This document shows positions 15,996 to 24,535 of a stretch of 64,000 nt of DNA, piece by piece. A model generated the notes under the pieces. That model did no database searches, was not told the DNA's origin, and saw only the letters and a list, made by a program, of their open reading frames with translations. Source of the DNA: Saccostrea cucullata (lineage: Eukaryota); the NCBI RefSeq assembly GCF_032062105.1, contig NW_026924391.1, positions 62,001 through 126,000 of the forward strand, in the 5' to 3' direction. The stretch's first letter is position 1; every line of letters begins with the position of its first letter. The position numbers and the translations under genes were made by a program.

Positions 15996-17918
15996 ATACA
16001 TATAATTAAAACAATAAATCATTTCTTTGAAATCGGAACACTTCTTTTCTTAAGAACTTAAATTTCAAAGACTTGAAGAGACATACACTACCAGAAGTAG
16101 CACTAACTTCAGCATTACTTTTTGATCTCTTCGACTCATGTGAGAAAACGCAAGCTTTATTTTTTTAATAACCTCAATTCAAATAAGCATTACCATTTTT
16201 GATTTTGTAAAACATATCACTATTACAATGATCTAGTTGGCAAATATAATCTATCATTGGGTTGTATTCAACTAACATATTCCATACAAATCATTAGGGG
16301 TTTGTTATTTTTATTCAAAATTTGACTGTAGAACGTTAAACATGCATTGCATGGTAGTGAGGGAGACACTTTTTCGCTCTTAAAAAATCTCATATTACTT
16401 GAAAGGAAAATGATTGTTCGTGGGCGAGAAAACTTCATATCTCCCTAACATTCATTCGAAAACATTTTATTATCCAAGATGCACGAAATTTCAAGAAAAT
16501 TAAATGAATAGAACAATGTGAAACAGATATCAGTCATACCGTTAGCATCGCTTATAAAAATTGCTATATTCCTACTTGCAAATTCTGTTTGATTTATAAA
16601 CCAGTAACTTTAAACCCCATCCCTTATACAAATGTAATTTTTTTGTTTAATTTTACATCTTTGAATCAACACAATCAATCGACGATAGAAAGAAACTAAT
16701 TCACTAAATACGCTTTTAGTTGCCTTATTGAAACATCACAATCAGTTTTCTTTGCATAACAAAGACAATTGTCAAATGACTTTCGCGACCAATCGCATTT
16801 TGCCAAACTTGTGATAGTTTATACAACTACATATATATATGTATATAGATACATTAATTTCATGAAGTATAATGAAATACTTTTATTGCATAAGGGAATT
16901 AAATTGGAAGATTTATCCAACCAAGAAAAGTGATATTTCGGGAGGACGAAGGGAAAACAATTTTTTTCTTGGTTGAATTTTTTTCACAAATTGATGCAAC
17001 GAATTGTTTATCAAACCGAAGCAAACCAACTCTTTAAAAAATGAACACTCGGTTTCAAATTCAGCACTGTTATAACGTCACTATCAGTTATTAAATGTCT
17101 ATGAAACATTTAACTGAAGTCTTTTTGAAATTCAAAGGCGTTTCCTTGATTATTCATTCAAAGCATCCTTTTCGAAAAATGATCATTTATTTTATCAATG
17201 CTGCTCTCGGGAGTTTTCATTTAACGAATGAAAACTATTACGGCAACATTCATGACATTTCCGAAAAGGTTTATTTTATTGAATAACGAAAGAATGTTTT
17301 GTTGCCCTGTCACGTGACTGTCTAAAACCAGTTTCAAACGTGTCTTGTAGAATAATTATAACGACGTATAATTGTCCGTCCTATGGCTCGTGGTGGGTAA
17401 GACCGGTCAAAAGTGGGATGCTTATATACTCATATTCTTCTCATCCCACTTGTTCAATTACCATAAATCCTTGCTTTATAGCCTGTTTACAGATTTTAAT
17501 GGTTCAAAATTTTTTTTAAGTTTTCATTTAAAAACGTAAAAAAAATATGTCAACAAAAACTATAAAAGCAATCTTTATGTAAAAATAGTTTTAAAAATAT
17601 TGCTTACATGTGTTATAAGAGACAAGTAAAAAAGTATGTCTTTAGAATTTATTAAAATATTATATGAAAGCTTTCACAGAGATGAACGTAAAGAAGAGAA
17701 TATAATGAAAATATCATGACATAACATACTGTCAAAGTGGCAAAGTAAAGAACGGTAATTTTCAGTGTCTTCTGAGAACTATTAGGCAAGGAAAATATCT
17801 CTATATTTATGTGTGAATATTGCTTTGGGAAAGGAATACATACTATGGTCTAATATTCTTTAAGGAATAATTTTTTATTTAAGCAGTAATACATTTTTAG
17901 AAAGTCCTCGGGTTATTT

Positions 17919-19969
17919 TCATTCTGTGTCGTCCGCAAACTCCTCCTTCTTCTGATCTAATTCACCGTCTTGCTGATCATCTGCTTGTTTCAAAAAACAT
18001 GAAATCAATGAATAGCTCTGTGTCAATTTACAAAATAAGCAAAAAATGTTTAATTTTTAATATTAACAATTTATGCTTCAATGCTTTAGTAATGATAGTT
18101 TTAATGAAAGTTTACTTTTGAACAAAAAATATGTTTCAAGACAATACTATTGAAATGATTTGATTTCAAAACTTCCTTTCCAATTACTGCGTATATGGTA
18201 GGTGGAAATCTGATTAGAGGCCTAAAGATGAAAAAAGATGTGAATTGGGCACAAAGACAGACAATAAACTCACCTTCCGGGTCTCCAGCACATACGTCTT
18301 CATACAGGTCCATGTACTCCTCCTTGGTCAGGATATCATCTGTAGGGTAAACATTGTTATGTCGTAAAAATTTTTTTATTCAGTGAAATAATAAATCTTT
18401 AATCTTACGACAGAGTGATACATTAAAGATCAGTGTGATTTAATTTACTTCGAATCCTTCATAAAACTTTTACTATTATCATCTCTCTCTAGTTTAAAGA
18501 TTACAAAAAGTAATAAATTACTACATGTATGACTACCCGGTAGATTTCACATCGAGTCATTCGTCATGTATGTTTACAAGTAATTATAATGCCCCATTTT
18601 CTCTGAGTACATTATTTGCGAGCAGTATCATTAATTTTAGGAAGTTTTATGACTAATTTACACACCACTGTTCTGGTCCAGTTTATCAAATAGGTCTTCT
18701 AACTCCACTAGTCCTGTACTTTGAATCAAGGTTGCAAATTCATCCTTGCTAACATTGTTGTCGAAGTTCAAATCAAGAGTGTTGAATCTACAGATATCTA
18801 TATCAGGTATTTCCTGCACAAAAGATAGAATAAATACATATTTACCTCTTACATATTGAAAAGATAAAAATTAATTTATAGAAAAAATAAATTATCTAAA
18901 AAAAAATGGAGAAGACTTTTATTAGAGACGCAAATGTTTCGAGACTTTGGTTATTATTTTTTCTGAATAACGTTCATATTCATACTGCGTTTAAAACATA
19001 ACTTTATGTAACCTCAGAGTACATTTCCTTTCATTTTAGATTAAAAAAGCACAGCCTTAAAAAGTGGCATCAGGTATGAAAACCTTAAAAAGAAGAACTA
19101 TTTTTAAAAGTTAAGATGTTTAAAATGATAGATGGCTTTTTTCAGACTATCTAAAATTAAGATATTTCTATTTGTTTTGCTACTTTATATTAAGATAGGA
19201 CTTTCCTGTAAATTACACTATTTAAATCAATCGCGTTTCATATAGATATCACAGATTTGAAACAATAACTGATTTATTTCCGACTCAGAAATAAATACCA
19301 GACACAGTTTAAAGTCAATTTAACTAGTAGAAACGTGGGGTTATTTAAGTTCAAAATAGTTGGAATTTTGAATTCGAACGTAAATAACAGATATCATGTT
19401 TATTATCTCGTATTTTTATTTTTTTAGCCCACATACAACAAATATAGCTTTAGAAATTAAGGATTATTAATACGTTTACATAAATAGTATACAAGAATAA
19501 GATTTTTCAAACATACGCTTTCTACAGATCGCTTTCTGTCTCTCCTAAACATGTCCCGTAATCTTCTTGCCATGGAAGCTACTGTAATCACAGTGCCTGC
19601 AACCTTTATTGCTCTACCCAAACCACTGGATCGGGACCTAGACCTTGATCTAGAAGAACGCCTCCGGCCCCACGATTCCGCTTGGTCAATTGTCAGAAGA
19701 CCAATCAGGCAAAGTACAGCGAGGGAACGGAAAATAAGCTAATTATAAAAAATTTAAAAAATTAATTTCATTGTACTATGTATGAATAAAACGTTGGCAA
19801 AACAATTTTGTCAGAAAAATTCTTACAAGAAATATTCACTTAATTACAAAAGATATAATACAATGAAAATATATATATTATAAGAAAATATATTTTGGCG
19901 TTGACTTATATTCTCTACCATATTTAATTGAGGTGGGTTACACTTTAACTTAATTAAAGCACTTACCAT
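17919..19969 (-). CDS. Secreted prepropeptide (family 1, copy B): strongly cationic Arg/Ser-rich amphipathic peptide plus two-EF-hand acidic pro-domain
   Basis: Exons ATG 19969-19967, 19738-19517, 18813-18666, 18339-18274 and 17983-17919. Protein: MLIFRSLAVLCLIGLLTIDQAES|WGRRRSSRSRSRSRSSGLGRAIKVAGTVITVASMARRLRDMFRRD-RKR-SVESEIPDIDICRFNTLDLNFDNNVSKDEFATLIQSTGLVELEDLFDKLDQNSDDILTKEEYMDLYEDVCAGDPEADDQQDGELDQKKEEFADDTE*. Exon phases match both paralogues. Confidence 0.9.
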
Positions 19970-20023: not shown

Positions 20024-20049
20024 TATTTATACTGACGACAACTTCCTTG
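20024..20049 (-). promoter_or_regulatory. TATA box with adjacent ETS-like site (copy B promoter)
   Basis: The - strand reads CAAGGAAGTT-gtcgtcag-TATAAATA, the same arrangement as in copy C. Confidence 0.65.
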
Positions 20050-22066: not shown

Positions 22067-24535
22067 ATGGTAATTACTTTTTTTAGCATGCTTATTTAAT
22101 GTAGTAGGAGAATATCACCCTTTTAATTTTCTTTCTTTCTTTTTTGGTTATTCCAATATTTTTGAGTTTTGAGAGATATCATTAATCTATTTATATTTTT
22201 TTTTTATTAAATATAAGCTCAACTCCCGTTACCTCAATGTTCTTCTCCTGATTTGTCTTCTGACAATTGGCCAAACAGAATCCTGGTCACGAAGGCGCTC
22301 TTCACGTTCTAGATCCAGATCTAGCGGCTTGGGCAGGGCATCAAGAGTTGCAGACACAATATTTACCATGGCTGATTTGGCACAAGTATTCCGTGACATG
22401 TTTAGAAGAGACAGAAAGCGATCCGCTGAAAATGTATGTTTGAATATCTATGTAAAATTAAACCACACTAATATCCCTAATATCTAATATTTTTGAGGTT
22501 TATACTAGCAAAAGTTAAGGGAATCGGTAAACATATATGCCTTAAATTAAGAAAATTTTATAATGTTGAATTTCAATCATAAAAATTACTCAATCCTCAT
22601 ATCAGTTGACAATGAATTTAACTGTTGGATTAAAAAGTTACCTGTGAATTTTTAAAAAGATTAATTTATTTACGAGTAATAAGAAAGGGATCAAATAACG
22701 ATAAGCTATGCTTTACTTTCTTTTATACAGGCAATACCTAATATAGATATATGTAGATTCACCACACTCGATTTAAATGACGACAACAACGTTACCAAGG
22801 AGGAATTAGACACTCTGATACAAAGCACGGGATTACTGGAGCTGGAGGAATTATTTGAACAGCTCGATCAAAACAATGGTAGGTATTTAAAAAAATGAAT
22901 TGTGCTCACAAGTAATCACATGTATCCAGAAAAAAGGTGAATAATAAATTTTAAAATATATAATATATACGGTATTTAAAAGTTTTGGAAACAGAGTAAA
23001 AATAATCATAAAAGAAAATTACTATGCACAATTTCCAACTTAATTAAATTCGATTAATTTTATTATTTTGTCGAATCAAATAGACGGGAAATATTTCTTT
23101 TTTACCTTACAGATGATATCGTGACAAAGGAGGAGTACATGGACTTGTATGAAGATGTATGTGATGGAGACCCGAAAGGTGAATTTATCTTTTTTTTCTG
23201 AGTGTTTGATATTTATTCGACATATTTATGTAATTTACATGTATTTTATTTTCAATATCTCGAGTTGCTTTTTGCACCCCATTATTAGCAAACCTACTTA
23301 CAATGTATCAACATGAAGAAGAGTTAATTCAAAAACCTTTTTACTTGAAAAGAAGTCTCTTGAAATGGCCTTCAATTCAACATTGAAACAAATTGACATC
23401 GTTTATTCACAAAACGATAATTTATTTTCATTCGTTAATTGATTTTGATTGGATATTTTGCTAGAAAAGAAATAAATTTTTGCAACTGTACAACTTTATC
23501 ATAGATGTGATGACATCATCTTTTTTTCTGTCGTGAACTTGCTTTATTCATTTAACAATACATACAAGCCCACTCTCACTTTTTTTCCTGACTTTACTTA
23601 TTACTAATAGAAATGTCAGTGAAAGTCCGCTCCCTTTCATTGCAGGTCAGCAAAGGGTAATGTAGCATGTTTGAGTAAAAGAGTAAAAAATAAACTTAAA
23701 GAAGTTGGACACCTCCCTCTCGTATACACAAATACGAAATAGGATTTTCGAATTTGGACTATTTTCCATTTTTTCTAAAATGTAGATTTTTAATTTATTT
23801 TTTTGGCTGGATCCCCAGTTTCGAAAACAATGCTACGTCACTGCAATATACCATTATCTCCTGTATATGCTGTACATATCTCTTAGTTGAGTTGTACAGA
23901 AGCAACATGCTCTACATGTACTACTGAAAATTTCTAAAACGAGGGAATCTATTGACAAAAAAATAGAAAATACAGGAAATCAATAGTTCCGTAAAAAATC
24001 ATCAGTTTGCAAAAATAATAACCATATGGTCAAACAACGACCTTGTTTGCAAATGCAGCCATTAACTCCCATGTTGGCTGAGGTTATCATACAAAGAAAT
24101 CAATTCTTTCACCCTTAATAATCCTCATACTTTTCAATCTGCTGTACCATGATATGGAGCACAAAGCGGGCGAGGCTGGTTGACAGGGAATGCTCACTTC
24201 TTCCTGAGACCTAATCCGACCTTTGGTGTTTTAGAGATCCGTGTTTGTTCTATCCTTTAAATTTTATTCCAGTTGACTTTTGAACTGGATTACTGTTATC
24301 ATCATAATTATTTCAATTTCCTAAATCTCAGTCAGAAAATGAAGTATTGAAATCGAATCAAATCAATAATAACGAAAGGGGTCATACATCACGTAAACTT
24401 CATTTCGCTTAATTTATATCGACAAATAATTCTTATTTCGTTGATTTTTCAAACATTTTTTTAACTCCAGCAAACAACCAACAAAACGACAAACCAGACC
24501 TGAAGAAAGATGAACATACAGAAGACACAGTTTGA
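22067..24535 (+). CDS. Secreted prepropeptide (family 1, copy C): cationic Arg/Ser-rich peptide plus two-EF-hand pro-domain
   Basis: Exons ATG 22067-22069, 22218-22433, 22731-22878, 23113-23178 and 24471-24535. Protein: MLNSRYLNVLLLICLLTIGQTES|WSRRRSSRSRSRSSGLGRASRVADTIFTMADLAQVFRDMFRRD-RKR-SAENAIPNIDICRFTTLDLNDDNNVTKEELDTLIQSTGLLELEELFEQLDQNNDDIVTKEEYMDLYEDVCDGDPKANNQQNDKPDLKKDEHTEDTV*. Confidence 0.9.

Follow-up and report, generated by a model that had tools for sequence, protein, structure and literature searches.

Gene B and its precursor

We analysed a stretch of 64,000 nucleotides from the hooded oyster Saccostrea cucullata (NCBI RefSeq assembly GCF_032062105.1, contig NW_026924391.1, positions 62,001 to 126,000), hereafter the window, with a focus on LOC134266338 (gene B), a minus-strand gene that encodes a short Arg/Ser (RS)-rich peptide. 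A first-pass annotation, made from the letters alone, had placed a 45-residue peptide with a net charge of about +12 at positions 19538-19672, and the reverse complement of this interval translates into exactly the string that was proposed. The peptide contains 13 Arg, 1 Lys and 2 Asp (net charge +12) and lacks cysteine. Its frame is part of exon 2, with a signal peptide before it and an R-K-R↓S processing site after it, and is included in NCBI model P0157 (uncharacterized protein LOC134266338, Saccostrea cucullata). The second haplotype carries the same 45-mer with a single Ser-to-Thr change, and a related RS peptide is found in the head-to-head paralogue C as well as in the orthologues of B and C in Saccostrea echinata. 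The 45-residue Arg/Ser-rich peptide is a real cargo of a secreted precursor, and the precursor belongs to an oyster gene family without prior description; a literature search that included the Ostrea edulis LOC identifiers returned no paper on the family among open-access papers and bioRxiv.

The prepropeptide of gene B, about 167 residues long, consists of a 23-residue signal peptide, the 45-residue cargo (+12), the R-K-R↓S site and a 96-residue acidic pro-domain (-26), in this order. The five exons sum to 504 nt, which equals 167 codons plus a stop. Secretion of the peptide, predicted in the first-pass annotation, agrees with its surroundings: a typical signal peptide, hydrophobic in its core and carrying small residues at positions -3 and -1, ends in A-E-S directly before the cargo, and a basic processing site that is invariant in the family follows it. 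Gene B has every element of the family: a conserved signal peptide immediately before a cysteine-free cargo, a K-R-S junction between cargo and pro-domain (here R-K-R-S), and an acidic pro-domain with two EF-hand loops and two Cys, for which exons 4 and 5 are assigned by homology. It also shares its exon plan with NCBI models P0151 (gene C) and P0156 (the S. echinata orthologue): the ATG ends exon 1, the cargo exon 2 ends in phase 0, and EF-hand 2 is split by a phase-1 intron. In gene B this intron interrupts the loop DQNS-DDILTKEE, and the split codon yields Asp. The exon 3 donor, G|gtgtgt, is the donor used in the spliced S. echinata orthologue. Coordinates are collected in Table 1.

The DNA around the gene is AT-rich (about 31% G+C in the window) and has a eukaryotic gene structure. 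Two other coding assignments of this interval were rejected: the plus-strand frame over the 45-mer is interrupted by stops, and an antisense open reading frame (ORF) at 19551-19742 on the plus strand is without support. The idea that the RS run is a simple repeat or an artefact of DNA slippage was likewise set aside, since its codons are heterogeneous (AGA TCA AGG TCT AGG TCC CGA TCC); Tandem Repeats Finder reports nothing at this run. The last intron of gene B ends in a tandem aag/cag acceptor (17981-17986), and two NCBI isoforms of the paralogue gene A (P0002 and P0153) differ by one Ala exactly at the matching tandem-acceptor junction.

Table 1. Features of gene B and its paralogues, in window coordinates
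Feature	Position	Strand	Basis or remark
LOC134266338 (gene B), five exons	19969-17919	minus	Saccostrea cucullata (hooded oyster)
TATAAATA box, putative core promoter upstream of exon 1	20024..20031	minus	read from sequence; putative function
Start codon, last bases of exon 1, followed by donor gtaagt	19967..19969	minus	P0157 start M-L-I-F equals ATG plus start of exon 2
Exon 2	19738-19517	minus	AG acceptor before, donor gtatgt after; ends in phase 0
Signal peptide, remaining 22 residues, ending A-E-S before Trp	19673..19738	minus	translation and family conservation; predicted cleavage site
RS arm WGRRRSSRSRSRSRSSGLG, residues 1-19 of the predicted mature peptide	19616..19672	minus	AlphaFold coil; core conserved
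Helix module RAIKVAGTVITVASMARRLRDMFRRD, residues 20-45	19538..19615	minus	predicted helix 17-43; homologous to paralogue modules
R-K-R processing site, then S-V-E-S	19517..19537	minus	R-K-R-S itself at 19537-19526
Exon 3: conserved Cys, EF-hand 1 loop DLNFDNNVSKDE, first half of EF-hand 2 (four loop residues)	18666..18813	minus	Pfam near-match; family alignment
Exon 4: rest of EF-hand 2, second conserved Cys	18274..18339	minus	frame intact in both haplotypes; outside NCBI model P0157
Exon 5: acidic tail, TGA stop, tandem aag/cag acceptor	17919..17983	minus	boundary by homology with gene C product P0151
AATAAA polyadenylation signal	17874..17879	minus	sequence
Paralogue C (LOC134266339)	22227..23177; exon 2 22227-22433	plus	head-to-head with gene B; same RS arm, less basic helix module
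Paralogue A (LOC134266340)	27509..28610; exon 2 28610-28410	minus	net-acidic cargo ending G-K-R; same pro-domain

An acidic EF-hand pro-domain with hypervariable cargos

Two conserved Cys flank the two canonical EF-hand loops in the pro-domain of gene B, and by homology these Cys are predicted to form a disulfide around the EF-hand pair. Exon 3 alone matches Pfam EF-hand_5/6 just under the cut-off, and full-length family members exceed the cut-off for EF-hand_7 and are borderline, at the cut-off, for SPARC_Ca_bdg, a Ca-binding domain of the secreted type. An AlphaFold model of the precursor, computed on the S. echinata orthologue P0156 in place of gene B itself, has a normal EF-hand pair with a predicted local distance difference test score (pLDDT) of 70-77. 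The closest solved chains found with the pro-domain, by Foldseek against the PDB and by a PDB sequence search, are generic EF-hand lobes only.

Judged from sequence comparison, this multigene family, found in oysters only, keeps the signal peptide, the K-R-S junction and the EF-hand domain conserved around a hypervariable cargo. Its members include LOC134266338-40, LOC134256470-73, LOC133190832 and LOC125671279; three of them (B, C and A) lie within the window. The 1.17-Gb S. cucullata assembly contains 14 matches to the EF-hand exon, which reduce to about 10 loci after merging haplotypes, and where the upstream cargo exon was found the cargo is linear, cysteine-free and mostly Arg/Lys-rich, and ends in K-R-S. 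Among 21 family sequences the K-R-S, the two Cys and the EF-hand residues are invariant, and any two sequences share on average 37% identity in the signal peptide, 19% in the cargo and 49% in the EF domain. Cargos range from 33 to 83 residues and from -2 to +15 in net charge, every pro-domain is acidic (-5 to -27), and a terminal G-K-R, which is an amidation signal, is common among the cargos. A HMMER profile of the EF-hand exon was searched against 1.84 billion representatives, and the single-domain matches all share the architecture of the family. The named relatives come only from S. cucullata, S. echinata and Ostrea edulis, and carry the label "uncharacterized protein" with the exception of "EF-hand calcium-binding domain-containing protein 1-like" and "protein S100-G-like, partial". 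Further matches lie on Logan, ENA and JGI contigs without an organism name, so absence of the family from Crassostrea/Magallana is not established. One Logan contig holds a full-length intron-less member, so this member is transcribed, with splicing according to the five-exon plan. In Logan contig L019 (run SRR16709593) the end of an unrelated ORF is fused to a full-length intron-less member, and this looks like a chimeric transcript assembly.

The architecture could also be that of a protein that is never cut and acts whole, as a secreted Ca-binding component of matrix or mucus, with shell formation as one possible setting. The EF-hand pair of the secreted product with its predicted disulfide, the borderline SPARC extracellular Ca-binding match and the low complexity of the charged domains are all consistent with such a protein. 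The EF-hands would then hold Ca2+, and the basic RS domain would hold polyanions such as acidic matrix proteins, chitin-associated polymers or carbonate surfaces. We give this reading a low probability. What speaks against it is that K-R-S is invariant in every member, that the many G-K-R amidation signals are sensible only if the protein is cut, and that a hypervariable cargo beside a conserved pro-domain is the pattern of effector-peptide families.

Several family loci outside the three-gene cluster, and one ORF close to it, deserve a separate description. A 35-kb contig, C10937 (L001, L004, L006, L016 and L017), carries the A-C-B cluster a second time, about 99% identical and with each cargo differing at one amino acid. 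It looks like an uncollapsed second haplotype of the cluster, in which case genome-wide copy counts are inflated about two-fold. A second cluster, represented by contig C22997 (L010-L012 and L014) together with P0163 and P0165-P0167, has four members with strongly amphipathic, cecropin-like cargos, which start with Trp, reach a hydrophobic moment of up to 1.1 and end in G-K-R; two of the members have an extra cargo exon. These four are the most suitable members for probing the activity of the family. In S. echinata, a third EF-hand exon (L020, 3296-3448) lies upstream of the C orthologue, with two residues inserted ahead of the conserved Cys. This exon probably represents the gene A orthologue, and the three-gene arrangement would then predate the split of the two Saccostrea species. 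Within the window itself, the minus strand encodes at 33717-34346 a 209-residue ORF made almost wholly of short (I/L)PK(I/V)xxP repeats and ending in G-K-R-S and a short Cys-containing tail, which could be another secreted and processed repeat protein near the cluster.

Cargo structure, selection and probable role

Cargo organization: the 45-mer had been described as bipartite, and both structure prediction and alignment bear this out. AlphaFold2 models residues 1-16 of the isolated peptide as coil and residues 17-43 as one helix with a pLDDT of about 85-88, in a single-sequence run that is for this reason biased towards helix. The alignment of the clade joins a variable Arg-rich arm to a conserved helix module of ~27 residues around a G-R-A-I motif, and the charge of this module ranges from -5 to +6 across paralogues. 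The junction between the two parts is G-R in the 45-mer, and in a Pro/Arg-rich paralogue a K-R site separates the modules. The relatives L009 (contig C19098) and L008 (contig C2060) have a long Pro/Arg-rich or Gln/Thr-rich arm, an internal K-R and then an acidic helix module, so arm and helix module are separable units in that clade; the L009 intron carries a long (TA)n microsatellite. The layout of the 45-mer is better described as an Arg arm, an apolar 15-mer (AIKVAGTVITVASMA) and an Arg-rich tail.

Selection on the RS arm: the two genes B and C, in each of the two Saccostrea species, have an identical W-x-RRRSSRSR, although most of its codons differ synonymously among the four genes. Between B and C the arm has accumulated 14 synonymous differences over 14.8 sites and 3 non-synonymous differences over 39.2 sites, and the helix module has non-synonymous and synonymous divergences (dN and dS) of 0.33 and 0.66, all of these counts being small. 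Because identity has been kept through saturated synonymous change, the RRRSSRSR core is, on this comparison of sequences, under protein-level constraint. Between the B genes of the two species the helix module is identical at 23 of 25 positions, and the distal arm is altered, with RS units in one species and G-L-S-R in the other. A tree built without the cargo resolves two well-supported clades (98/99 each), and amphipathic cargos of the W-RRR-hydrophobic type occur in both. The RS arm of the B/C lineage is thus most simply read as a derived state that replaced an amphipathic W-RRR-hydrophobic N-terminal helix.

Phosphorylation of the serines, raised in the first-pass annotation as a possible off-switch, can be set against the known kinases. 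Fam20C is a secretory-pathway kinase with the canonical motif S-x-E, and SR-protein kinases are cytosolic or nuclear. Direct reading of the RS arm shows no acidic residue at +2 of any Ser, and the arm consequently lacks the canonical S-x-E motif of Fam20C.

Host defence: we read the 45-mer, with moderate confidence and largely by analogy, as the cargo of a secreted and processed EF-hand precursor that would act in host defence. Such a role is probable for the peptide and the family because conserved prepro-regions surround a hypervariable cationic cargo in tandem clusters, as they do in mytimycin and the myticalins (PMC8004829, PMC12294457). That gene B is a real, secreted and processed family member is much more certain than any antimicrobial activity. 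In the proposed pathway, which builds on the established behaviour of signal peptidase, prohormone convertases, carboxypeptidases and amidation signals, signal peptidase would cleave after A-E-S, an enzyme of the furin/prohormone-convertase type would cleave after R-K-R, and a carboxypeptidase would trim the basic residues, freeing the 45-mer and a Ca2+-binding acidic pro-piece. Before release, the pro-piece may neutralise the cargo and escort it through synthesis and storage; the charges of the two are complementary in gene B (+12 for the cargo and -26 for the pro-domain). After release, the 45-mer would be a host-defence effector: its disordered Arg/Ser arm could bind polyanionic microbial surfaces or nucleic acids by polyvalent electrostatic contacts, and its apolar 15-residue stretch with the Arg-rich tail could interact with membranes.

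Four groups of observations weigh against this reading. First, NCBI model P0157 follows exons 1-3 as given here but continues into intron 3, where it terminates (…NSGV*); for the allele of the second haplotype NCBI has a model of the same kind, also ending in intron 3, and the product so modelled would have one EF-hand and one unpaired Cys. The five-exon form itself rests on homology. Second come features of the peptide itself. In the precursor model of the orthologue, helix is confined to the last ~17 cargo residues and the cargo has a pLDDT of about 50 or below. The claim that the C-terminal half resembles a cecropin- or piscidin-style amphipathic helix holds as far as a helix is predicted and its last 11-18 residues are amphipathic (the last 11 reach a moment of 0.95, and MARRLRDMFRR is the only clearly amphipathic segment); it fails for the helix as a whole, as the moment of the 28-residue C-terminal half, 0.21, equals the mean of shuffled sequences, 55% of which reach 0.21. 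The best 18-residue moment, 0.57, is the lowest among cationic members of the family, where values of 0.84-1.11 are typical. The 45-mer matches no Pfam family even at E <= 10, and no antimicrobial family; for the cargo of one relative, a sub-threshold Moricin match (E 0.027) was dismissed as chance. Internal RR/RRR sites could also be cut. Third, between species the arm has a dN/dS of about 1, on very few sites, together with the RS-to-G-L-S-R change. Fourth, the cargo of one paralogue is net-acidic, a misfit for a purely cationic antimicrobial family.

Alternatively, gene B could be a degenerating or idle paralogue, whose lineage (B/C) lost an active amphipathic helix, whose RS run is a remnant, and whose truncated NCBI model means that no full precursor is made. 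The low amphipathicity, the two models that end in intron 3, the between-species dN/dS and the changes in length of the RS run among the compared genes all agree with decay. Yet neither haplotype has an interrupted exon or a damaged splice site in any of the five exons, four genes share an unchanged RRRSSRSR core although synonymous change is saturated, the helix module is nearly unchanged between species, and the annotation of the orthologue, whose donor is the same, is fully spliced. We consider decay improbable. We prefer the five-exon form of gene B to the NCBI model, as a reading of the sequence that has three arguments behind it. First, both haplotypes have open, conserved exons 4 and 5. 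Second, full splicing is annotated for the S. echinata orthologue P0156, which has an identical G|gtgtgt donor. Third, the truncated product would be half an EF-hand pair with an unpaired Cys. NCBI models P0151 and P0156, five exons each, agree with this structure.

The oyster family joins a structured, Ca2+-binding pro-domain, of the kind also present in mytimycin precursors, to many linear cargos that look unrelated to one another: some are strongly amphipathic, others Pro/Arg-rich, Arg/Asn-rich, acidic or Arg/Ser-rich. The role of the pro-domain is directly testable, because the same scaffold carries such diverse cargos. The RS peptide is the oddest of them, a secreted protamine-like arm that is maintained by protein-level selection. 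Should it be active, it would be a new sequence type of marine-salt-tolerant polycationic peptide and would offer a lead on how oysters defend themselves against Vibrio and herpesvirus; should it be inactive, it would show how such cargos decay. A 2025 survey reported that no amphipathic alpha-helical antimicrobial peptides had been described in bivalves and that cysteine-free ones were very few (PMC12294457). The most far-reaching combination of our observations, which we put forward as a speculation with little weight, would make the family the first linear/alpha-helical host-defence peptide system of bivalves. In such a system the EF-hand pair would be a calmodulin-like, Ca2+-dependent clamp that keeps the basic cargo inactive in the cell and frees it on secretion; the B/C lineage would have turned a membrane-active N-terminal helix into a protamine-like RS arm and moved its target from membranes to polyanions (nucleic acids, lipopolysaccharide, viral particles), possibly tunable by Ser phosphorylation.

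Comparison with known precursors and peptides

The closest known precursors are mytimycin, the myticalins and pleurin/HCS2, and none of them fits. Two peptide classes named in the first-pass annotation offer partial likenesses. Cecropins are resembled at the level of the family only, by cargos of the P0163 type, which start with Trp and have an N-half that is basic and amphipathic, with a moment of about 1.1, then a Gly hinge, a C-half rich in Ala, Val and Gly, and a signal for amidation. In contrast, the N-half of the 45-mer consists of RS repeats, its C-terminus is charged and not amidated, and it has no Pfam match. Protamines and the RS domains of SR proteins share with the 45-mer Arg clusters broken by Ser and predicted disorder, but the 45-mer has a signal peptide, a convertase site and a secreted EF-hand pro-domain. 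No nuclear-protein features and no homology to SR proteins or protamines were detected, and Pfam finds EF-hands only.

Pleurin/HCS2: a gastropod neuropeptide precursor, HCS2, has an EF-hand region (Bogdanov et al. 1998, as cited in PMC8398477). Pleurin/HCS2 (Cragi-pleurin in oysters) is, like the product of gene B, a secreted precursor of molluscs whose peptides directly follow the signal peptide, and in Helix it has a region with EF-hand motifs. The existence of such a precursor, together with the convertase sites and frequent G-K-R amidation signals of the oyster family, raises the alternative of a signalling precursor of neuropeptide, hormone or pheromone type, whose cargo acts on a receptor and not on microbes. 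Pleurin peptides, as described in PMC8398477, are short and end in PRX-amide, whereas the oyster cargos are long (33-83 residues), highly charged and fast-evolving, and vary between paralogues and species in a manner unlike conserved neuropeptides. The corresponding P-R-X-G-(K/R) motif is absent from the cargo. No pleurin-like protein occurs among the single-domain matches of the exhaustive EF-hand-exon profile search or among the matches of word-index searches, in which the pleurin sequence was not itself compared. We regard a signalling role as unlikely.

Myticalins: these precursors comprise a signal peptide, a cationic linear peptide, a dibasic site and an anionic extension (PMC12294457). 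Myticalins and modiocalins share with the oyster family a cysteine-free, strongly cationic and compositionally biased peptide, a tripartite precursor, hypervariable multigene clusters and frequent C-terminal amidation (PMC12294457). They differ in the extension, which is of low complexity and without a domain (the term 'EF-hand' is absent from PMC12294457), in contrast to the oyster EF-hand pair. They also differ in gene structure: myticalin genes have three exons, the first of which is non-coding, and their second intron is in phase 1 (PMC12294457), whereas gene B has five exons, an ATG that closes exon 1 and a phase-0 intron behind the cargo exon.

Mytimycin: the mussel mytimycin precursors have an EF-hand C-terminal extension after a dibasic site, the role of which is unknown (PMC8004829). 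The mytimycin peptide is 54 residues long with 12 cysteines and is reported from Mytilida (PMC8004829); it differs in these respects from the cysteine-free cargo of LOC134266338 and from a family whose named matches are oyster-only. Among the matches of the EF-hand-exon profile search and of word-index searches there is no mytimycin-named or Cys-rich protein, the mytimycin sequence not having itself been compared, and homology between the mytimycin and oyster EF-hand pro-domains would be at best distant. The two systems have the same order of parts, a signal peptide, a cationic mature peptide, a dibasic site and an acidic EF-hand extension (PMC8004829), and both are lineage-restricted multigene families of bivalves.

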